The notes under the pieces were generated by a model. That model was given only the letters and a program-made list of their open reading frames with translations. It ran no database searches and was not told where the DNA came from. DNA of 64,000 bases, from the IMG/VR virus record IMGVR_UViG_3300012988_000016, positions 186,001 through 250,000 of that record, one strand, 5' to 3'. A program made the translations under genes and the position numbers. Of the stretch, positions 2,965-37,575 are shown piece by piece. How positions within the stretch are numbered: position 1 is the stretch's first letter; the number at the start of each line of letters is the position of its first letter.

Positions 2965-3315
2965 TTACCAGTTTCCGTCTCTAACTCGTTGCTGTATCTC
3001 GACCAATTCTTGGTCCGGCAAATCTTTGATCTCGGCCAAAAGTCGAATGAAAAGCTCAGGCCGCTTCATCAACGCCTTCTTGAAGGTAGCCGATACTCTG
3101 CCGGTCATCGCCAATAGGAGGTCCGGACTTGCCCCCAAGTCTTGGGCGATAGCCAACACCACCTTCTCGGAAGGGTCATTGAACCGTCCCAGCTCCAATT
3201 TGGACAGATAGCCTGGGTCCACCCCCACCCGTTGAGCCACTTGCCGTAGCGAAAAGCTAGGATCTGTCGCTCTTTTGGCTTCTCGAAAAGCTTTGATGTA
3301 TTGCCCGAAATCCAC
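2965..3315 (-). CDS. XRE-family HTH transcriptional regulator
   Basis: SLRQVAQRVGVDPGYLSKLELGRFNDPSEKVVLAIAQDL is a cro/C1-type HTH. Confidence 0.88.
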   Translation of the reverse strand: MDFGQYIKAFREAKRATDPSFSLRQVAQRVGVDPGYLSKLELGRFNDPSEKVVLAIAQDLGASPDLLLAMTGRVSATFKKALMKRPELFIRLLAEIKDLPDQELVEIQQRVRDGNW

Positions 3316-18404: not shown

Positions 18405-19397
18405 TCAGAACCGCATATCCAGGCCCGCCAATCGGGCCTGTTCCAAAACGCCTTGTTGCTCAGTCGACTCAAGGCGTTTTTGGATCTCGGCTGCCGATTG
18501 GGGGTTGATCTCAATCCCCAAATAGTCCCGTCCCAGCCGCTGTGCCTCCTGAAGAGTCGTCCCACTGCCGGCGAACGGATCCAGAACCAGACAAGGGTCG
18601 ATCTGATCCGTCTCACACTTGCAAGTCATTTGCCAACCCTTGGTCAGATATTCGGGGGGTTGGATGGACGGCATGCTGTATCCCTTGAAGGCGCCGGTCC
18701 CCACACTGCCGTAGCGGGTCGGGTGCCCTTCCCGCTCCGCCACTTCTGACAGGCGTTCCAACTGACGCTCCAGCGGGGCCCCACAGAGGCCACAGCAGCC
18801 TTTCTCGCTGGTGGAGAGGCGGATGCACCGGTTCGGTAGAGCGGTCGGGAATACGGCAACGTGGGCGCCTCCATAGCGTTCAGTCGGTATGTTCCAGCAG
18901 TTCCGCAGATTGGCGTTTGAGTCTTCTCTGACCGCCTCAGAGTCGTAATAGTAGTGCTTTTGCTTGGTCAGCAGGAACAACGGTTCGAATGCTCTGGAGG
19001 GGCGGTCATGCACGTTCTCCGGCATACCGTTTCCCTTGTTCCAGATGATTTCCGACCGAAGGAAGAACCCTATTTGGCGCAACCGGAGGACGAGCCGCCA
19101 GGGTATTCCCAACAGCTCCTTGTTTAGGTAGGTATCGTCGATGTTGAGCCAGAACGAACCGTCGTCCCTCAGGACTCGGTACACTTGTTGGCATATTTCG
19201 ACCATGTGATCCAGATACTGCTCTGAGGTCTTCTCATGGCCCAGCTGACCCTGCCAACCGTCCGGCCATTCAGCTGATGTGGGACCGTAGTCTCTTAGGG
19301 CATAATAGGGCGGGCTGGTGATGCAACAGTGGACGTGTTGATCGGGGAGCTGGTGTAGTTGGTCGAGTGCGGCGCCTAGGAGGATCTGATTTCTCAC
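18405..19397 (-). CDS. Site-specific DNA methyltransferase (N4-C/N6-A, beta class)
   Basis: CCITSPPYY catalytic motif precedes VLDPFAGSGTT (SAM-binding); start moved to GTG 19397, 10 nt after GGTGTA. Confidence 0.9.
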   Translation of the reverse strand: MRNQILLGAALDQLHQLPDQHVHCCITSPPYYALRDYGPTSAEWPDGWQGQLGHEKTSEQYLDHMVEICQQVYRVLRDDGSFWLNIDDTYLNKELLGIPWRLVLRLRQIGFFLRSEIIWNKGNGMPENVHDRPSRAFEPLFLLTKQKHYYYDSEAVREDSNANLRNCWNIPTERYGGAHVAVFPTALPNRCIRLSTSEKGCCGLCGAPLERQLERLSEVAEREGHPTRYGSVGTGAFKGYSMPSIQPPEYLTKGWQMTCKCETDQIDPCLVLDPFAGSGTTLQEAQRLGRDYLGIEINPQSAAEIQKRLESTEQQGVLEQARLAGLDMRF

Positions 19398-19443
19398 TGG
19401 TGGAGGATACACCAAAAATTCTTTTGCAAACTCTCAGATGGTC

Positions 19444-19458: not shown

Positions 19459-19560
19459 CACGATCTAAAGGGGTCGCTAACCAGGTCCCCAGCTACCACC
19501 AAATATGCAAAGCTGGGCAAAGGGCCCCTAGGACCAACATCCTAGGGGCCTTTATTTTTC
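19459..19560 (+). ncRNA. tracrRNA
   Basis: 19462-19481 GATCTAAAGGGGTCGCTAAC pairs with repeat nt 1-19 (one U bulge, one G-U, one U-U mismatch); followed by CCCAGCT/AGCTGGG stem and GGCCCCTAGG/CCTAGGGGCC hairpin with T-rich tail; ends approximate. Confidence 0.85.
19521..19560 (+). terminator. Intrinsic terminator-like hairpin at tracrRNA 3' end
   Basis: AGGGCCCCTAGG-ACCAACAT-CCTAGGGGCCTT followed by TATTTTTC. Confidence 0.7.
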
Positions 19561-19572
19561 CAGGACATAGAC

Positions 19573-22500
19573 ATGACACTTACATTGGGTCTAGATATCG
19601 GTACCAACTCGATTGGGCACGCACTTGTTGAGACGGATGAACAGGGGAACGTCATCTCCCTGAAACACATTGGAGTCCGAATCTTCAGTGACAGTCGAAC
19701 CGATAAAGAGAAGAAGCCTCTCAACGAGGCCAGGCGAACGGCTAGACAAGCGAGACGACAACGCGAACGCAAGAAGTCGAGGATGAAAGCCGTCTTGCGA
19801 GTATTGCGAGAACACGGGCTAGACCCTCAAGATTCCCTTCTGGAGAGCCCTTACGCAGCCAGGGCCGCCGCCCTCACAGGGCCGCTCAGCAGGTCTCAGG
19901 TAGGGAGGGCTATCTGGCATATTGCCAAACACAGAGGCCCTCGACTGGTGCGAAAAGATGACAAGGAGCAAGGTGTCATCAAAGAAGGCATCCGCAGTCT
20001 CGAAACCGAGATGCTGGCACAGAAGGCTCGGACCTATGGTGAACTTCTTGAAAGAATCCGGCTGAATGGTGGGTCTGTACGTCTCCGAGCTAACAGTGAG
20101 GGCTCATACAATCGTTACCCGTCCAGACAGGTGATGGAGGCTGAGTTCAACCATCTGTGGGAATCTCAAGTACCGCACCATCCAGAGGTTATGACCGAGG
20201 CTCTTAGAGAGCGCCTCATAACGGCCATCTTCTATCAGCGTCCTTTGAAGCCAGTCTATCCAGGGCGATGTACGCTGGAACCAGATGAATATCGGATGCC
20301 AAAGGCGATGCCAATGGCCCATGAGTTCAGGATCCGATCGGAGGTGGCCAATCTGACCCTCAAACAGGGAGATGAGGTCCGAACCCTAACGGCCAATGAG
20401 CGTCAAATCGTAGTTGATGGTTTGTTGAACTCAGAGAAGCTGACCTTTACCGCTATCGCCAAACTGCTGGGATTTCGTGCCGGCGTGAAGTTCAATCTCG
20501 AAGGAGATGACGGTGATGGGGGCAAGGCCAGGAATTACTTGATCGGAGATCTGACTTCCAGCAAGATTCGTAGTGTGTGGCCCAATTTCTCTAAAATGCC
20601 GGAGAACATGAGACTTAGCTTGATCCTAGCATTGCTTGACATTGACGATGAGCTAGAACTCAAATGTAAGCTTCGATCCGATTTTGGGATTTCACCAGAG
20701 GTGGTGGATCAGTTGTCTAGTTTGATGCTGCCAGCCGGATACATCAATCTCAGCCAAAAAGCTGTGAGGGCCGTCTTGCCTTATCTTCAACAAGGTATGG
20801 GCTACGCACAAGCCTGTGCAGCTGCTGGATACCATCATTCCGATCATCGTCCAGAGGAATTGACCCCAATCCTACCCTTCTACAACGAACTCCCAGGAAT
20901 GAAGCGTTATCTGGGGCAGGAACAAAAGGGTAAACCTGGAAGGATCTCTAATCCAACAGTCCATGTGGCTTTGAATCAGGTTCGCAAGGTTTACAATACG
21001 TTGGTTGAGGTCTTTGGGGTGCCTGATTGTGTCAATATCGAGGTCACTCGTGAATTGAAACAGACGGCCAAGCAGAAGATCGCGGCCAATAAGCAGAATG
21101 CGGCCAACAAGAAGGTTCGTGACGCCTTCAAAGAGAAGTTCCCCGAGCGTGCCAACTCCGACCAAGACCTGGTACGTTGGAGGTTGTGGAATGAACTTCC
21201 AGAGGAGCGCAAGGTCTGTGTCTACTCTGGAAAAGAGATTACTCTTAACGACCTTTTCTCACCTAGGGTTGAAATTGACCACATTATCCCCCACTCGATC
21301 TCTTTCGACAACAGCCCGTCTAATCTGGTGCTTTGTGCTCAAGGGGCTAACCGTCTGAAGACCAATAAGACTCCTCATGAAGCCTTCGCCCCTGGCCTAC
21401 ACAAGGAGTTCAACTGGTCAGCCATTGAGCAACGAGTGTTTGAACTGGCAGCTGACAAATGCGGCACCTGGGCTAAAAAGAAGCTTCGCTTCAAGCCAGA
21501 TTATCTAGATGTAGGAGGGGATTTCGCCACCAGGCAATTGAACGACACGGCTTACTTGTCAAAAGTTGTCCGTATCTACCTAGGACACTCCTGTCCAAAG
21601 GTGTTAGCCGTACGGGGTGCCGTTACGGCCATCTGCCGCAAAGAATGGGGCCTCGACCGATTGTTACGAGACACAGTTTCCGATCATGCCGATCTGTTCT
21701 GCCTATCCTCGGTCAAGAGCACGGGGGTGTTTATGGCCCCTCATCATGTGACAGGAGGGTCGCACGACATTCGGGAAGATTGCTCGGTCAATAAGCTGCT
21801 CAAATTTGGAGCTGAAGTAGTACGTGTAGATCCTATCGGGAGGTTCCAAACGCCAGGTGAGATTCGCAGGATCGAGCCAAGAGGTCCAAAGGTTAACTTC
21901 CAAAATCTTAGAACCACAACTAGGAAGCCGTTGACTAGCCTTACGGCGAACAGTATCTCACAGATCAAAGATGATGGGTTGAGAACCAAAATCACAGCCC
22001 ATATCAAAGAGGTCAATCCCAAGCTCCTTACCGACACTCTGAATCGAGAGGCTAAGGTAGAATTGTCCAGGCTGTTGGGAGAGTTTGGCCAGAAGCACTC
22101 CGTTGGAAGGGTCCGGATTGTCGCCAACAAATCTGGAGTCATCGTTCGACACGGAGCCGCTAACCAACACACAAAGGTGTTGATAGCAGATACGAATCAT
22201 CATGGAGATGTGGTGGTAAGAGACGGTAAAGTGAAGATGCTCCTGACCACGTATGCAGAACTCAACCATCCACCAGAAGTGGAAGCTGGATGGACGCTAA
22301 AGATGCGACTGCACAAGGGCGACATGATTCGTGTGCCAGGATACGTCTACAACAAATACCCAAAGAAGCCGAATTATGGGAAGGACAGATCTGACCACCG
22401 GCATCATGCGGTGGATGCTTTCGTGATAGCTTGCATCACACCAAGTCTGTTGCGCAAGATCAGTCGTTCCATCGCCTTGTCCAAGTACAACCAGTTGCAC

Positions 22501-22635
22501 GAGTTCCCAGAGCCGTACGAGAGGTTCAAGCAAGAACTGAAGACACATTTGAGGAAACTCGTTGTGTCCAATAAATTGGACCATAGCATCAGCGCCCCCA
22601 TTTTCACCGAAACGAACTACGGCTTCACAGCCTGA
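19573..22635 (+). CDS. cas9: Type II-C Cas9, 1020 aa, with rearranged C-terminal domain order
   Basis: RuvC-I LGLDIGTNSIG (D8), Arg-rich bridge helix, REC, RuvC-II NIEVTRE (E490), HNH EIDHIIP...N (H570), RQLNDTAY, RuvC-III DHRHHAVDA (H945/D948); flanked by tracrRNA and array. Confidence 0.97.
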   Translation: MTLTLGLDIGTNSIGHALVETDEQGNVISLKHIGVRIFSDSRTDKEKKPLNEARRTARQARRQRERKKSRMKAVLRVLREHGLDPQDSLLESPYAARAAALTGPLSRSQVGRAIWHIAKHRGPRLVRKDDKEQGVIKEGIRSLETEMLAQKARTYGELLERIRLNGGSVRLRANSEGSYNRYPSRQVMEAEFNHLWESQVPHHPEVMTEALRERLITAIFYQRPLKPVYPGRCTLEPDEYRMPKAMPMAHEFRIRSEVANLTLKQGDEVRTLTANERQIVVDGLLNSEKLTFTAIAKLLGFRAGVKFNLEGDDGDGGKARNYLIGDLTSSKIRSVWPNFSKMPENMRLSLILALLDIDDELELKCKLRSDFGISPEVVDQLSSLMLPAGYINLSQKAVRAVLPYLQQGMGYAQACAAAGYHHSDHRPEELTPILPFYNELPGMKRYLGQEQKGKPGRISNPTVHVALNQVRKVYNTLVEVFGVPDCVNIEVTRELKQTAKQKIAANKQNAANKKVRDAFKEKFPERANSDQDLVRWRLWNELPEERKVCVYSGKEITLNDLFSPRVEIDHIIPHSISFDNSPSNLVLCAQGANRLKTNKTPHEAFAPGLHKEFNWSAIEQRVFELAADKCGTWAKKKLRFKPDYLDVGGDFATRQLNDTAYLSKVVRIYLGHSCPKVLAVRGAVTAICRKEWGLDRLLRDTVSDHADLFCLSSVKSTGVFMAPHHVTGGSHDIREDCSVNKLLKFGAEVVRVDPIGRFQTPGEIRRIEPRGPKVNFQNLRTTTRKPLTSLTANSISQIKDDGLRTKITAHIKEVNPKLLTDTLNREAKVELSRLLGEFGQKHSVGRVRIVANKSGVIVRHGAANQHTKVLIADTNHHGDVVVRDGKVKMLLTTYAELNHPPEVEAGWTLKMRLHKGDMIRVPGYVYNKYPKKPNYGKDRSDHRHHAVDAFVIACITPSLLRKISRSIALSKYNQLHEFPEPYERFKQELKTHLRKLVVSNKLDHSISAPIFTETNYGFTA

Positions 22636-22700
22636 TTTGCGAGAGCCTCTATCGAGAGAGGCCTCATCTGCTCTTTGACAACCGAACCGCTCGCAAACCG

Positions 22701-22735
22701 TCGTGCAAGTACTCAATATTAATGTGCTTGCACGA
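22701..22735. repeat. Inverted repeat in CRISPR leader
   Basis: TCGTGCAAGTAC-N11-GTGCTTGCACGA, ending 5 nt before repeat 1. Confidence 0.75.
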
Positions 22736-22740
22736 ATAGG

Positions 22741-23717
22741 GTTGTGACCCCTTTTGATCTCTCGATCCATTCTCCCGTCTTGGCCATCCCCAATCTCACC
22801 GCCGGATCCGCGTTGTGACCCCTTTTGATCTCTCGATCCATTCTCCCACCCAGGCAACCAGTTTGTCCGCGCACCCCTAGAATGTTGTGACCCCTTTTGA
22901 TCTCTCGATCCATTCTCCCAGTCAGGCCAATGTCTCATACTACCTAAAGAGAGCTGTTGTGACCCCTTTTGATCTCTCGATCCATTCTCCCGGTGAAAGG
23001 ATGATGTCAGAATGACTTGGTCAATGTGTTGTGACCCCTTTTGATCTCTCGATCCATTCTCCCAGCCAACAGCTTCGCTGCACAGATGCAGTTTGATGCG
23101 TTGTGACCCCTTTTGATCTCTCGATCCATTCTCCCCGAGCCAACTGACGTCAGCGAACCACGCCCCCTGGTAGTTGTGACCCCTTTTGATCTCTCGATCC
23201 ATTCTCCCTCGACGCCCGAGATCGTCACCAAGTACACGCACACGTTGTGACCCCTTTTGATCTCTCGATCCATTCTCCCTACGTGCCGAGACGCTGTTCG
23301 ACTGTTACAAGGAGGTTGTGACCCCTTTTGATCTTCCCGATCCATTCTCACTACGCTGCTCAAGTAAGAAGGCGTTTCCGATCTGTTATGACCCCCTTTA
23401 TCTTCTAACCCATTCCACCACCCCTCTTGGTGCTGGTGTCTCCGCGTGAAGTTGTGACCCCTTATCGTCTTGTCCTTTCACACCAACTCGTCGCCAACAC
23501 GAAGTTGTGACCCCCTTCTGATCTTCTGATCCTTTCTCACAACAAGAGAACCGTTACTCAACACGGAACATAAGGTTGTGACCCCTTTTAGATCCCTTCG
23601 AGACATTCTCCTCTATCGTAAACACCTCGGCGTTGTAACCCCTTTTGATCGTCTGATCCTTTCTCACGTTGTGAGATCAACTACAACGAGCTCGCCAAGT
23701 GTTGTGACCCCTTTTGA
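22741..23717 (+). CRISPR. CRISPR array: 36-nt repeat GTTGTGACCCCTTTTGATCTCTCGATCCATTCTCCC, 8 identical plus 7 degenerate copies
   Basis: Identical repeats start at 22741, 22812, 22884, 22956, 23028, 23100, 23173 and 23244; degenerate ones at 23315, 23385, 23451, 23504, 23575, 23632 and 23701; first 8 spacers 35-37 nt; orientation taken from tracr pairing and trailer decay. Confidence 0.97.
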
Positions 23718-23803
23718 GTACGTCGAGTGACCTGAAACGTCAACGATACGAAGGCCGAGCTCCTCAGGGGGTTCGGCCTTTGCCGTTTGGTGTATCGATC
23801 CCC

Positions 23804-24421
23804 ATGCCTCCGCCCGACCCTCCTGCTTCAAGCCTACAGATAGACCTGAATGGCCTGATCACACCCTTCGGCGGGGGGCTGACCGGTCTCCCGCCTGGAG
23901 AGTTGTGGAACCTGTCGGGCGTCGGTAGTTTGGTCTATTCGGGGGAGTTCACCCAGCAGGTGTTCGATAGAATGATCGCCAGATGTGTTGGTGGGGTCAG
24001 GCCTGCCTTTGCGATCATGAATCGAACCGCCTACAACGAGTGTGTGATGAATGGCGGGTGTCAGAACACCATCACTCCGATGCCCTCAATCGAAGGCACC
24101 CACACTACTTCAGTCAGCTACGCGGGGATCCGTCTCTATGTCAACAATGAGACGTCCAATGTATCGATATTGCTGAGCAGTGACTTTGTTCAGCTGAGTA
24201 TCGCCCAAAGGATCGACCCGCCCTTCACCTCTGTCCCGATCACTGGATTCACCCGTTTACAATTGGAGTGGATGATACCATCCGGGGCTAGAGACGGCTT
24301 CGATGATAGTGTAGCGTTCCTCCATTCTCCTCAGGATTTCACCAAAATCATGTCTGAGCCGGTCCGACAGAGCAGGCTACAGATCCTGCGTGACGGTGAT
24401 GGGTTGAAAGCACAGGAATGA
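23804..24421 (+). CDS. Hypothetical protein with shared C-terminal motif
   Basis: Start moved to ATG 23804 (9 nt after GGTGTA 23789-23794); ends VRQSRLQILRDGDGLKAQE. Confidence 0.7.
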   Translation: MPPPDPPASSLQIDLNGLITPFGGGLTGLPPGELWNLSGVGSLVYSGEFTQQVFDRMIARCVGGVRPAFAIMNRTAYNECVMNGGCQNTITPMPSIEGTHTTSVSYAGIRLYVNNETSNVSILLSSDFVQLSIAQRIDPPFTSVPITGFTRLQLEWMIPSGARDGFDDSVAFLHSPQDFTKIMSEPVRQSRLQILRDGDGLKAQE

Positions 24422-24424
24422 CGT

Positions 24425-24955
24425 ATGCCCCCTTCTAGACCCACCATATCTCTAGCGGCAGATCGAGACGGCAACCTACTGATCACATCTATCAAGTACT
24501 TGAGAGAAGAACATCTGTGGCATTTGGGCGGCTTCACCCGACAAGTGTTGGAACAGCTGATCGATCGTAGCATCGATATCCCAGCATTTGTTTGGATCAC
24601 TCCAGAAGCATACAACGAATTAGCCAGTGATTCGGGGACGAATCCAAGCACTTACCGAGGTATGCCTATCCATGTCAACAGTGCGATAGATGAAGACAAC
24701 GTTACCGCCGTGTTGATGTCGACAGCCTACTGTCCGTTGGCTGTCGCCCACAGAAGAGATCCCCCACCTATTAGGCAATTCAATTTTCTCAGATCCAGTC
24801 TAGAGTTGGGGAGACCGCCATCGGTTCAAGAGGATTTGTTGAACCTACAAGCAGAAGCGACGCACTCGGAAGCGGTTGTCAAGCAAGCATTTGCTGAAGT
24901 GGTGCGTCAGAGCCGTCTACAGATCTTGCGTGATGGGGACGGTCTGGATGGCTAA
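24425..24955 (+). CDS. Hypothetical protein with shared C-terminal motif
   Basis: Ends VRQSRLQILRDGDGLDG. Confidence 0.7.
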   Translation: MPPSRPTISLAADRDGNLLITSIKYLREEHLWHLGGFTRQVLEQLIDRSIDIPAFVWITPEAYNELASDSGTNPSTYRGMPIHVNSAIDEDNVTAVLMSTAYCPLAVAHRRDPPPIRQFNFLRSSLELGRPPSVQEDLLNLQAEATHSEAVVKQAFAEVVRQSRLQILRDGDGLDG

Positions 24956-25595
24956 GCCCCACAAGCATTTCCGCCAACATCCAAAGCGTCTGGTGGGCAC
25001 GTTCTGGGTCAATGAGCGAGTACTAAAGGTCATCAAGATTTCCAAGCAGCGGGCTTGGTGTGTGGTGGTGCCTGGGCTGGAGATCATGCGGATAGATATC
25101 CAGGATCTGTTGCTCCAGTCGACCTACGTGGGACGAGAGATCCCCGATCGCAGTCGGAACAAGTATGTGGTGGCAAAGAATGGGGGATCCATTTCCGAAA
25201 TCTTGGGGATTACCGGTAATGAAGTTACTTTATCGGTTGTGCGTGGAGACTTATCTCAATTGAGCCCGCAGAACCTATGGGAGGGTTACCACATCTACCC
25301 TGTAGTAGGCTTCTTCGATGAATTCCGACATCCCACCGAAGCCGAGATACAAGATGGAGAAACTGTTTACCAACGATGGATGTTGTGGATACGAGCTGGT
25401 ATTCTAGAGCATGAGACGGAAATCAGAGAATTCTGTGACACCAGCTGGACAGCTCCTGAGGAACCCCCTGATGATAAGCCGGAACGAGCCCCAATCGTCG
25501 AAGTCCCAATTTCCCCCATTAGCCGTCAAAGCAGCTATCAGATCCTTCAGCAAGGGGACGGCCTAGACCCTACCAAGAAAGCCTCCGATGACTAA
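24948..25595 (+). CDS. Hypothetical protein, member of local paralog family
   Basis: PKRLVGTFWV N-terminus resembles the 32448 gene; ends SRQSSYQILQQGDGLD. Confidence 0.65.
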   Translation: MAKPHKHFRQHPKRLVGTFWVNERVLKVIKISKQRAWCVVVPGLEIMRIDIQDLLLQSTYVGREIPDRSRNKYVVAKNGGSISEILGITGNEVTLSVVRGDLSQLSPQNLWEGYHIYPVVGFFDEFRHPTEAEIQDGETVYQRWMLWIRAGILEHETEIREFCDTSWTAPEEPPDDKPERAPIVEVPISPISRQSSYQILQQGDGLDPTKKASDD

Positions 25596-33900: not shown

Positions 33901-36900
33901 TCATTCCTCATTGATCAACGCCCAGAGCTGGCGACCGATCGACATACCGCTGTAGTGCTGAGTCCCCACACCAGCAGCCGCCAGCATGCTCTCATTGTCG
34001 AGACCATCTGTCGAGACCGCCACCTCTACCTTGCGCATCAGCAGATCATACAGCTGTTGTTGGAGTGAATCCATGTAGACAAGGAAATGGATCCTGGTGT
34101 CGAGCTTTTGACCGACACGATCCACCCGACCAACCGCCTGACGGAAAATGTGGGGACTGCATTGGGGGTTCTCCATCCAAATCTCAGTGGAGAAGTAGGT
34201 CAGAACGTTGAGACCGGTGCTGATCCCCTGGGGGTTGGCGACCAACACCCTAGCCTGTTTGCTGACAATCTGTTTCTCGATCCATGCTTGTCGTTTGCCA
34301 GGAGGGACCGCATCAGCGTACAGGACGGGAGCCTTGACGCCCAAATGTTGCTCAATCAGGCGGCTGATTCGTTGCAGCAAATTGGTGTGCCAGCCAAACA
34401 CCATAGCGTTTCGACCCTCAGCCAGCTCGGCTTTGAGGAGCTCCAACATCTTCTCTTCCTTGGCCGACAACATCTCGGCTGGGAATTGCTTGCCGGTCGC
34501 CACCAGCTCTCCCCCAACTGATTCAGGGTAGCGGATCTCGTACATTCCCTCAGCATTGTTGCCCACATCAGCCGAGCTGCGATCCAGGTAGCTGGGCAGT
34601 TCAGACAATTGCCCGAACAGCTTGCCCGATAGATCGGGCTGAAACTGATCTTTCTTAATCTGCTGTTTGAGTGCCGAAAGCAGATCCTTGTAACTGCCCA
34701 ACAGCTCAGCCGAAGCCTCCACCGCGTGTTTCTCAACCCTGCAGGGCGGGATATCGATCGCCAGGTCGGCCTTGTGGAGTGTGACCGCAATAGGCAGCAG
34801 GTGACGGAATAGGAACAAGGGAAGGATGCCAGGAGCATCACCGGCCGTCCGTTCATTCCGTTGAACACGGTCCGATACTGCCCCAAACGCCACCACCTCA
34901 CCTGTCTCACGATCCTTGTCAGAGAGGACTCGCTTACGGTAGCCATATCGGTCAACGAACCGTTGCTTATCTGCTCGGCCAAACTCCTGACGGAAGCTAG
35001 GCGAAACGGCCCACATGTTTTGGTAGAGCGATGTGGCGTAACCGTTCATCGCACTGCCGGTCATGAGAATCGAAGGGATCCCTAGACCGGTTAGACGGTG
35101 CGCCGCCATACCTTGTGCGGACGAATCAGAGCTGTATTCGTGACTTTCGTCAAGTAACAACAGGTCAAAGAAATTGGGCCGATACTTGGCCAAATGGTTG
35201 GCCAACGCCACTCGACGAGGCTCAGGAACCGCCTGATAGAGCCGTCCCTCGCAAGCAGGCAAAGACGATACCTTACCGGCTACAATCAGCTTTCGGAGAA
35301 TCGCCTCCGCCAATGTCAAACTGTTGGGTTCCAACCCATCAAGCTGAAGCTTGCCATCAACCCAAGTGATCTTGCCCAATCGGCACGTATATCCCCAAGA
35401 TTGTTTGGTGCTGGAGTAGAGGGACGCCCAACTGGCGTTTCGGAACGTATCGTCTTGCTCAAACGATAGCTGCAGGTCTGAACCTTGCTCCAACAACATC
35501 ACCAAACTTCGGGCCGCGTCTGAGAGGGCATAAGACTCCCCCGAATCGGCCGCCAATTGGCGAACCATGCGGGCAATCCGCTCTGGATTGTAGTCGGCCA
35601 GCATCAGCCGGCCAAACAATTTGAGCAAATTGGCATCTTCGGGGTCTTTCAGAAGCCGGCTGTAGACCTTGGGCAACAAGGCTTCGACCCATTCGGATTC
35701 GAACCGCCACTCAGGTTTCGGTTCCACCTTTTGCAGCTGATCCAGGATCCGCTGGGAATGTCGACTGGGCAACATGGTCCTGACTTGATGATTGTCAGGA
35801 CTGTAGGACATCAACCGAACAGCCAGCTTCTCGGCTTCGAAGCCCAGCCGCCCTTTGATCACGATGCCTTGATGTTGGCAAGTCAACCGCTTCTTGACGA
35901 TATCTTCCTTGGGAAGCGGAGCTCCGCATTTGGGACAACTACCCTCCACACTAGCCCAGCCATGACCCAACTTGGCCGCCTCACGAGACATGATGGCGAT
36001 CAGCTGTTTGTCGGCTGGGACGGTCGACAGATCGTCCAAATCTTGGAGATCAGCCAATACCCTCACCTCAGCGTCAGGCAGATTTAGTGCAGTTTCTTTC
36101 CGCCATGAGGCCAATAGATGGGGCGGGCAGATCACAAGGGTCCTATGGGCGATCGTTTGACTAACGGCCAACGCCACACTGGTCTTACCAGACCCGATTT
36201 CCCCCAACAGCTTACCATTCTTGAAACGGCGATTCTTGCACTGATTACCCCCCAACAGCATGATCAACGCTTTGGCGGTATGTTGCTGAGCACTAAATAG
36301 GGGGCGAGCTGTGGGCTTGAGTTGCACCCGATCAGCGTCCCGCTTGGGGTCATACAAGACAGGGCACTGCTGAAGCATCACCTGCATTAAGCTTGGCCCG
36401 TAGTGCTCCAACAAATCCTCGATCGACATCTGCTCGACATCAAGCGAGCTGGTCTTACCTAGCTTGGTTAGAGTTGTGTACTTCTTAGTCTTCAGATCCA
36501 AGATTGTGGTCACCAACTTGGGTTGCTGAACCTGTGTCACAGAGGTAACTTCCCCTGATTTGTTGGTTTTTTCCTCAACCGTCACAAAGTCTCGGTCGAA
36601 CACCCCCTTGACCAATAGGTCCGGCAGCCCCTGTGTGATGGGGGCAACTCGCCTGCCATTGAACAGTCCGCTAGCAATGCCGGCTGCAATGTGGGCGGGC
36701 CGTGGAGGAGTAGCGAGCTGATAGGTGCGGAACATCAGCTCCGATAGGGGCAGTGTGGGCATGATATGGGGGACCGCACTAAGGCCTCCCACCCTAGCGC
36801 TTTGCTGCCACGGACGGATCTTCCGCATCAATCCCAGGCGATCAAAATCTCGCATCCGCCAGTCGATCACATGATAGCCGCCCGTCTGTGGAGGGGTGAA

Positions 36901-37575
36901 GAGAACTTTGGTTGGCTCCCCCAACACTGGCATCAACTCAACCGATTCCGCCCACGTCTCTACTTTGCGCAAAAGCTTGGGATCTGAGCGCAGCTGTGTC
37001 TCGCCCTTGACCCCAAACAGTACCACTTGCTTGTAGGCATCGAAGTCCTCATCAGGGAAGCGGAAGCAGACCAGGTCGGTGAATTGGGTGGCAAGCGTCT
37101 TGGCCGATGCCTTGAGGGCATAGAACGGCACAACGAATACCAACACCCCACCCACCACCAAGGCGCTTTGGAAACGGTCTAGGAACCGTTGTTCGAGTCG
37201 GCCATGGACTGGGTCCAGATCATAGGGCGGATTCAGATACAGCAGGTCTCCAACAGGCTTCTCAAACGCAATCTGGAACGCATCCCCCTGTAGGGTGGCC
37301 ATCGGGCTACGCCAGTGACATCGCAGATCTTTGATCGTTTGCTCTAGCGTTTGGAAGCGGGTCTTCTCTAGTTCGCACGTGTAGACGGAGAGCGTCGACA
37401 ACGATCCAGCGAACGCCTGACGGGCCAAATCAGCAATCGCCCTACCCTCACCCGCACACGGATCCATGAGGACATACCCCGCATGATCAGCCGTATCCAA
37501 CAGACGGGCGATGTGTGAGATAATGTGTGGAGGAGTGGGGAAGTACCCTCCACTGGCAATCGCTTCGAGTCTCAT
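33901..37575 (-). CDS. N6-adenine methyltransferase-SF2 helicase fusion (DUF6094/DarB-like)
   Basis: GYFPTP, DPCAGEG and LYLNPPYD MTase motifs; GEIGSGKT Walker A, LLLDESHE Walker B, MTGS and FRQAVGRVDRVGQ helicase motif VI. Confidence 0.88.
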   Translation of the reverse strand: MRLEAIASGGYFPTPPHIISHIARLLDTADHAGYVLMDPCAGEGRAIADLARQAFAGSLSTLSVYTCELEKTRFQTLEQTIKDLRCHWRSPMATLQGDAFQIAFEKPVGDLLYLNPPYDLDPVHGRLEQRFLDRFQSALVVGGVLVFVVPFYALKASAKTLATQFTDLVCFRFPDEDFDAYKQVVLFGVKGETQLRSDPKLLRKVETWAESVELMPVLGEPTKVLFTPPQTGGYHVIDWRMRDFDRLGLMRKIRPWQQSARVGGLSAVPHIMPTLPLSELMFRTYQLATPPRPAHIAAGIASGLFNGRRVAPITQGLPDLLVKGVFDRDFVTVEEKTNKSGEVTSVTQVQQPKLVTTILDLKTKKYTTLTKLGKTSSLDVEQMSIEDLLEHYGPSLMQVMLQQCPVLYDPKRDADRVQLKPTARPLFSAQQHTAKALIMLLGGNQCKNRRFKNGKLLGEIGSGKTSVALAVSQTIAHRTLVICPPHLLASWRKETALNLPDAEVRVLADLQDLDDLSTVPADKQLIAIMSREAAKLGHGWASVEGSCPKCGAPLPKEDIVKKRLTCQHQGIVIKGRLGFEAEKLAVRLMSYSPDNHQVRTMLPSRHSQRILDQLQKVEPKPEWRFESEWVEALLPKVYSRLLKDPEDANLLKLFGRLMLADYNPERIARMVRQLAADSGESYALSDAARSLVMLLEQGSDLQLSFEQDDTFRNASWASLYSSTKQSWGYTCRLGKITWVDGKLQLDGLEPNSLTLAEAILRKLIVAGKVSSLPACEGRLYQAVPEPRRVALANHLAKYRPNFFDLLLLDESHEYSSDSSAQGMAAHRLTGLGIPSILMTGSAMNGYATSLYQNMWAVSPSFRQEFGRADKQRFVDRYGYRKRVLSDKDRETGEVVAFGAVSDRVQRNERTAGDAPGILPLFLFRHLLPIAVTLHKADLAIDIPPCRVEKHAVEASAELLGSYKDLLSALKQQIKKDQFQPDLSGKLFGQLSELPSYLDRSSADVGNNAEGMYEIRYPESVGGELVATGKQFPAEMLSAKEEKMLELLKAELAEGRNAMVFGWHTNLLQRISRLIEQHLGVKAPVLYADAVPPGKRQAWIEKQIVSKQARVLVANPQGISTGLNVLTYFSTEIWMENPQCSPHIFRQAVGRVDRVGQKLDTRIHFLVYMDSLQQQLYDLLMRKVEVAVSTDGLDNESMLAAAGVGTQHYSGMSIGRQLWALINEE

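Follow-up and report, generated by a model that had tools for sequence, protein, structure and literature searches.

Is the order in which the C-terminal domains of Cas9 follow one another open to change in nature? This question is raised by a 64,000-nucleotide (nt) stretch of a contig listed in IMG/VR as viral genome IMGVR_UViG_3300012988_000016 (positions 186,001 to 250,000; hereafter the window), in which a single ORF (open reading frame) encodes a 1020-amino-acid (aa) Cas9. To our knowledge, the arrangement in which the RuvC-III segment precedes the region that reads the protospacer adjacent motif (PAM) has been regarded as invariable, and other connectivities have been products of protein engineering alone. 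The protein analyzed here has every part that defines a Cas9, in a domain order found in no other. If the N-terminal part is called X, the second part of RuvC-III A, the wedge (WED) domain with the first part of the PAM-interacting (PI) domain B, and the end of PI C, relatives run X-A-B-C and this protein runs X-C-B-A, with each block in frame and in its native orientation.

Order and junctions of the C-terminal blocks

A profile hidden Markov model built from 142 full-length relatives of normal order (1029 positions) matches the protein in four non-colinear pieces (Table 1). A sub-profile of the family's C-terminal end recognizes aa 717-763 with an expectation value (E) of 4e-8, placing block C at about profile positions 961-1026, and in a pairwise comparison residues 932-993 of P0040, a relative of normal order, align with query residues 699-756 (44% identity, E 2e-10). 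By BLASTP against two further relatives (P0005 and P0015), query residues 937-1019 fall on the segment directly after the WGL motif, residues ~783-919 on the segment following A, and residues 714-756 on the last 50 residues. These matches bear out the first-pass annotation, made from the letters alone, which had found the KDRxDHRHHAVDA segment displaced to the end of the protein and had read the remainder as C-B-A. Its block coordinates proved right to within a few residues, and the separate alignment of blocks B and C to WED/PI profiles that it had proposed gave significant matches for both (3e-18 and 4e-8).

The insert was also searched alone against 1.84 billion protein representatives. Its B part was found at ~835-1000 of proteins of roughly 1040-1080 aa and its C part, in a protein of 1032 aa, at 939-993; each has its usual C-terminal location there, and no protein in this set carries B or C parts in an internal position. 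A second protein with C-B-A order was found neither among these representatives nor in 5.8 billion clusters, and literature searches turned up no natural reordered or permuted Cas9, in line with the earlier statement that no described Cas9 with this order was known. Moreover, a B-C profile of the relatives matches Nme1Cas9 857-1023, Nme2Cas9 861-1063 and CbCas9 1177-1340.

The protein is a type II-C-like Cas9. Pfam reports HNH_4 (E 3.9e-22, aa 549-602), lying between RuvC-II and RuvC-III, RuvC_III (1.6e-20, aa 934-971) and the Cas9 alpha-helical lobe (Cas9_a, 5e-11). Against PDB chains, aa 4-697 are colinear with NmeCas9 12-715 (E 1e-61), and the HHAxDA segment (the DHRHHAVDA helix) aligns apart from them, aa 941-973 corresponding to NmeCas9 719-751; thus, ~240 residues stand where NmeCas9 has four, and just 80 residues remain after the catalytic RuvC-III helix. 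In an alignment with 98 relatives, D8, E490, N593, H945 and D948, the bridge-helix arginines R54, R58, R61, R66 and R70, and K937 and R939 in block A are invariant, and H570 is nearly so, which upholds the earlier reading of an unbroken frame with D8, E490, H570, H945 and D948 intact. The query also retains the most conserved residues of block B (R of RKP, VR, NH, DG and GD, in an alignment with 30 relatives) and the block C motif VRVDPIGR. RuvC-I, -II and -III with their Asp/Glu/His/Asp, an HNH domain, an arginine-rich bridge helix with REC, and a trans-activating CRISPR RNA (tracrRNA) with a CRISPR array are all present, and the protein departs from the canonical C-terminal order RuvC-III, WED, PI.

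An AGGA stands 9 nt before the start at 19573, and the alignment with relatives begins at residue 1. The public Joint Genome Institute (JGI) gene call (P0001, 895 aa) begins only at codon 126, so that RuvC-I with D8 is missing from it. This truncation, together with the tendency of colinear aligners to misalign the C-terminal third, is a warning for annotation.

Table 1. Features of the window, with Cas9 residues and matches to the 142-relative profile where these apply
Feature	Residues	Positions	Strand	Content or basis	Profile match
cas9 ORF		19573-22635	+	1020 codons plus stop, unbroken	
Block X	1-698	19573-21666	+	RuvC-I, bridge helix, REC, RuvC-II, HNH, first part of RuvC-III; ends WGLDRLLR; colinear with all relatives	aa 1-701 to 1-720, E 2.7e-210
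Block C	699-763	21667-21861	+	last part of PI to the family's native C-terminus; sub-profile, P0040	aa 738-762 to 1002-1026, E 0.013
Block B	764-921	21862-22335	+	post-YG hairpin, WED, first part of PI; ends MRLHKGDMIRV; profile, 30-relative alignment	aa 779-921 to 819-955, E 3e-18
PGYVYNKYP	922-930	22336-22362	+	sole stretch without native assignment	no significant match
Block A	931-1020	22363-22632	+	second part of RuvC-III (H945, D948), phosphate-lock-loop equivalent; profile	aa 931-1019 to 718-810, E 2e-28
tracrRNA candidate		19462-19560	+	anti-repeat, two hairpins, T-run	
CRISPR array		22741-23350	+	36-nt repeats, eight of them identical and a ninth, at 23315, diverged; 8 spacers (35-37 nt)	
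Spacer 6		23136-23172	+	match to tailed-phage contig	

All three breakpoints lie in loops of the normal protein: the first after WGLxxLL, the second a few residues past the YG strand found behind the phosphate-lock loop, and the third after the GDxIxV strand in PI. Next to nothing was gained or lost at the junctions. Block C, the extreme C-terminus in relatives, begins with the strand behind GDxIxV and extends to the native end of the family, ...VRVDPIGRFQTPG. This native C-terminus (...DPIGRFQTPG) passes straight into the native hairpin that relatives have behind YG, with which block B opens (compare EIDGKRYNLVSRKP in P0015). Block A opens with the native loop before KNRxDHRHH and ends in YGFTA. 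The blocks had earlier been described as joined by new linkers. Two of these are in fact native, EIRRIEPRGPKVNFQNL aligning with the hairpin after the YG strand and KKPNYG with the loop before KNRxDHRHH; what is left of that description is the ~9 residues of PGYVYNKYP, which MAFFT placed inconsistently. Likewise, the claim that this is not a simple circular permutation holds for the whole protein and for the whole C-terminal region, where C-B-A is no cyclic rotation of A-B-C, and fails for the WED-PI module itself, which is circularly permuted, C (profile ~961-1026) preceding B (profile ~809-955).

Because C-B-A is no rotation of A-B-C, at least two duplication-deletion or excision-reintegration steps would be needed to reach it. 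One route might have been A-B-C to B-C-A to C-B-A, and the fusion of the native C-terminus to the start of WED would be the product expected of a tandem B-C duplication. No DNA-level trace of the rearrangement remains, and neither repeats nor microhomology were found at the three junctions. In one pairwise alignment, overlaps at the breakpoints (DTVS versus GDMI and GYVY versus LFCL) are suggestive of a tandem-duplication signature; they are too short for significance, and the profile does not show them. A fossil of the old A-B continuation beyond the stop codon was considered as well, one tblastn match having extended past that codon, and was rejected: read-through with X leaves the profile score no higher (16.9 versus 17.6 bits, with a mean of 18.2 for shuffled tails), and the DNA after the stop shows no similarity to the gene above that of shuffles.

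Fold, function and competing explanations

In our judgment it is rather likely that this is a genuine and probably functional Cas9 of a ~309-kb soil phage, carrying a permuted WED-PI module in a RuvC-III loop and having an ordinary Cas9 fold. A and C have swapped places around B by way of the three loop breakpoints. The chain leaves RuvC-III after the helix ending in WGLDRLLR and enters PI at its last sheet (C), reaches the native C-terminus and continues from it straight into the native start of WED (B), passes through WED and the first part of PI, and returns to RuvC, where it would supply the H945/D948 helix and the phosphate-lock loop (A) and where it ends. The circularly permuted module (C-B) is in this way inserted in the RuvC-III loop between WGLxxLL and KxRxDHRHH, and the protein would most likely fold to the ordinary Cas9 shape with altered connectivity. 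Together with the adjacent tracrRNA and an array that lacks cas1 and cas2, it would act as an RNA-guided DNA endonuclease against competing phages. A native-like fold, nuclease activity and PAM reading are what we infer for it. For the more specific proposal of an active natural Cas9 in which the permuted WED-PI module is threaded through the RuvC-III loop, the PAM strand is tethered to RuvC and the lock loop forms the C-terminus, we see the chances as evenly balanced.

Two elements that license DNA unwinding adjoin the new chain ends. The alignment behind this statement partly uses what we take to be the sequence of Nme1Cas9, checked against the residue numbers given in the preprint cited next. 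It places the lock-loop equivalent at E1013-T1014, the protein ending six residues after T1014, and the equivalent of the H1024-N1029 strand at ~aa 712-719, just past the X|C junction at the start of block C. In Nme1Cas9, the phosphate-lock loop is E845/T846, and the PAM-reading residues are Q981, H1024, T1027 and N1029 (bioRxiv 10.1101/2023.01.17.524369).

Two AlphaFold2 models were made, the first of aa 700-935 with the B-C rows of 30 relatives and with block C lacking aligned rows, the second of the full length with 98 X+A rows and none for the insert. Both leave the docking of C and B outside the alignment input, since piece-wise MAFFT misplaced the B and C pieces. In the first model, block B reaches a block-mean predicted local distance difference test score (pLDDT) of 89-98 at aa 780-849 and ~70 at aa 850-879, and the top 41 Foldseek matches are all Cas9 structures (CbCas9, HpaCas9, Nme1Cas9 and Cas9d; best probability ~1). 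The full-length model has a mean pLDDT of 76.6 and a predicted template modeling score (pTM) of 0.66, with X mostly above 90 and aa 940-1000 at 70-95; the high confidence of A follows from the supplied alignment and is no independent test. Its best Foldseek folds are catalytic or post-cleavage states of ThermoCas9 and Nme1Cas9, with template modeling (TM) scores of 0.47-0.52 over ~740 columns.

Several observations weigh against a functional enzyme of ordinary fold. The Cas9 is a singleton in the protein sets searched and has no close relative with which purifying selection could be tested. Block C is of low confidence in both AlphaFold2 models (pLDDT below 50 in the first), and so is block B in the full-length model, in which the last 17 residues fall below 50. 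The packing of C, B and A as in a normal Cas9 is presumed from sequence. With the PAM-reading strand and the phosphate-lock loop beside new ends and junctions, function could be impaired. Finally, a hold-out test puts the query, for both B and C scored relative to X, into the family's lower tail, only 7 of 71 held-out members scoring below it for B and 3 of 71 for C.

The rearrangement may accordingly be real and its product crippled or repurposed, PAM reading or RuvC having been lost so as to leave a nickase or a binding-only protein, or the gene being in decay; we regard this as possible but doubtful. Besides the low B and C scores, a PAM strand just past the X|C junction and a lock loop six residues from the new C-terminus, it is favored by the restriction of the C-B-A order to one lineage, the lack of cas1 and cas2 at the locus and the degenerate distal half of the array. 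The hold-out scores, however, read differently beside those of equally divergent relatives. The query scores 653/85/71/18 bits for X/A/B/C, compared with 645/87/67/27 for P0024 and 754/105/66/14 for P0040, both of normal order; its block A is normal relative to X, and its B and C are no worse relative to X than those of P0024, P0025 and P0040. As similarly divergent normal-order members score alike, there is no sign of extra decay. Moreover, the 1020 codons hold neither stop nor frameshift, no catalytic residue and no conserved B or C motif is missing, the tracrRNA, terminator included, is intact, as are the eight identical repeats, and spacers match co-occurring phage DNA with one or two mismatches. 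The lack of cas1 and cas2 is, according to excerpts of PMC7162821, the rule in huge phages.

An assembly artefact, in the form of a chimeric or misjoined contig, has largely been refuted already, and we consider it very improbable. The source contig (JGI 3300012988 Ga0164306_10000002, 308,895 bp) is matched by an independent Logan assembly of a soil run, in which a 215-kb contig is identical over 19500-22740 with an even depth of 23.6 and is shortened only in part of the CRISPR array; the two assemblers agree, and each of the three junctions lies within both assemblies. Two further soil samples yield short contigs with zero differences to the window, one of them (21708-21892) reaching 154 and 31 nt to either side of C|B and two (22208-22400 and 22323-22512) bridging B|A. 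The junctions carry no repeats that could mislead an assembler, and three misjoins that all fall in frame and in loops would be very unlikely. For the X|C junction (21666/21667), coverage is limited to the two assemblies, which may come from the same sample; this speaks for an artefact and at the same time weighs on the reading of a functional Cas9. Also in favor of an artefact, junction support consists of contigs, not raw reads. The first-pass annotation had called for confirmation of the junctions in raw or long reads; at the level of contigs, confirmation came from other samples for C|B and B|A and from the two assemblies alone for X|C.

That B and C are an unrelated insertion in a C-terminally truncated Cas9, as the shortness of block C and its weak match to the full-length profile (domain E 0.013) might suggest, is refuted and hardly credible, given that B matches the family's WED/PI at 3e-18 and also Nme1Cas9 857-1023 and CbCas9, that C matches the family's C-terminus at 4e-8 and P0040 at 2e-10, and that the top Foldseek matches are Cas9 structures only.

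If the rearranged Cas9 is active, it is a natural example of rewired Cas9 chain connectivity. It would be the first natural proof that the nuclease lobe of Cas9 tolerates rewiring and that evolution can re-thread it, possibly with a change in PAM licensing (candidate 3' GGG), and it would point to sites, validated by nature, for new termini, loops and inserted domains. Because the elements are neighbors in its sequence, it would also be a test case for the coupling of PAM recognition, phosphate lock and RuvC activation. Altered PAM reading, evasion of anti-CRISPRs and engineering use are speculation at this stage.

Guide RNA, spacer targets and surroundings of the locus

The tracrRNA candidate lies upstream of cas9. 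Aligned locally with the reverse-complemented repeat, its anti-repeat (19462-19481) proves complementary to repeat nt 1-20. Its predicted fold has an energy of -43.9 kcal/mol (z -3.9) and closes with a 14-bp terminal hairpin followed by UUUAUUUUU; no Rfam family scored above threshold in the window. An N6/N4 DNA methyltransferase gene (18405-19415, minus strand) stands divergently beside it.

The array begins 105 nt past the cas9 stop, and the leader between them contains an imperfect hairpin (GAGAGCCTCT ... AGAGAGGCCTC, 22641-22667) directly after the stop codon. Approximately eight increasingly degenerate and irregularly spaced repeat copies at 23315-23733 overlap the start of ORF 23714-24421 and look like the old, decaying trailer end of the array. 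A Logan contig of run X1 joins 22740 to 23244 and skips seven repeat-spacer units, which may reflect either collapse by the assembler or a shorter array variant in the population.

Two spacers have matches in other DNA. Spacer 6 matches positions 3158-3194 of an 8,087-bp contig of the same metagenome (L004, Ga0164306_10002763) with 2/37 mismatches and a 3' flank of GGGAATGTGGAT. This contig carries tail sheath, tape measure and baseplate genes, so that a phage or prophage with a contractile tail appears to be a target of the presumed huge phage. Spacer 7 (23209-23243) differs at one position from its match in a 1,239-bp Logan contig of soil run X3, where the 3' flank is GGGTTGGCGCC. Both flanks start with GGG, which as a candidate 3' PAM with n=2 is only a lead. 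When exact 24-mers of spacers 1, 5 and 7 were searched in IMG/VR, only the array itself matched, and the flanks of both known protospacers are absent from IMG/VR.

No Cas1 or Cas2 was found by tblastn within the window with the proteins of a relative, or among the called genes around cas9. The locus thus differs from a standard type II-C locus, in which cas1 and cas2 stand next to cas9 and csn2 and cas4 are absent.

The window is rich in orphan ORFs and also encodes methyltransferases, a DnaJ-domain protein, an integrase and a tail-spike-like protein. Its own phage signals (a tail-spike-like N-terminus, the integrase and methylases) are weak, and the contig carries a PcfJ domain; it may be a large plasmid instead of a phage. 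Three consecutive orphan ORFs (23714-24421, 24425-24955 and 24876-25595) share the C-terminal motif QSRLQILRDGDGL / SSYQILQQGDGL and have no Pfam match. A 1224-aa methyltransferase-helicase fusion (DUF6094, ResIII and Helicase_C; 33901-37575, minus strand) lies 11 kb downstream of cas9. Both methyltransferase genes may relate to self-protection or anti-restriction.

Comparison with relatives and known systems

Huge phages carry Cas9-type CRISPR systems, usually without cas1 and cas2, as stated in excerpts of Al-Shayeb et al. 2020 (PMC7162821). The system described here resembles those of the excerpts in having a type II Cas9 on what is probably a phage genome of >200 kb, in lacking Cas1, Cas2 and Cas4 and in directing spacers against other phages; a reordered effector is not mentioned in these excerpts.

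The nearest metagenomic relatives are just 37-39% identical over aa 1-700, which makes the whole lineage an orphan and the rearrangement undatable. The closest relative of normal order is P0040 (1032 aa), encoded on a mobile element, which is best or near-best for X, A and C. Like the query, it lacks cas1 and cas2, adjoins a CRISPR array and lies among orphan ORFs; unlike the query, it has A-B-C order, a different repeat sequence and its array upstream of cas9. That array (L006:6580-8000) has 13-14 repeats and is flanked on both sides by 51-nt copies, 88% identical, that contain an anti-repeat-like stretch and are possibly two tracrRNA genes. Another near relative of normal order, P0042 (37% identity), belongs to a cas9-cas1-cas2 locus inside a Mu-like prophage (L001, with Portal_Mu, Mu_F, Gam, GemA and Mor).

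Block B shows a different pattern of relationship. It is only 28% identical between P0040 and the query, and similarity in B is barely detectable in the relatives closest in X. Its nearest counterparts are P0028, P0005 and P0013, which, when the N-terminal 700 aa are compared, stand at ranks 124-136 among 144. These ranks suggest a mosaic history of the WED-PI module. Exchange of WED-PI modules between Cas9 lineages has been reported, and the block B pattern would fit it.

The query is like canonical type II-C Cas9 proteins (Nme1Cas9, ThermoCas9/GeoCas9 and HpaCas9) in having all domains and motifs, a similar size, a 36-nt repeat and a tracrRNA. Unlike them, it runs after WGL through the end of PI, the start of WED/PI and the end of RuvC-III, finishes at the phosphate-lock loop, lacks cas1 and cas2 and has ~27% identity to solved structures. 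In every relative retrieved, and in every Cas9 and IscB that we know of, RuvC-III is followed by a target- or PAM-interacting C-terminal region.

The closest parallel comes from engineering. Engineered circularly permuted Cas9 (Cas9-CP) reportedly tolerates new termini and rejoined native ends, including at sites in RuvC-III and in the C-terminal domain. It is said to be a permutation of the whole protein, in which an artificial linker joins the native N- and C-termini. In the Cas9 of this phage contig, unlike Cas9-CP, the change is natural, local and nested, and the native ends are fused almost directly.

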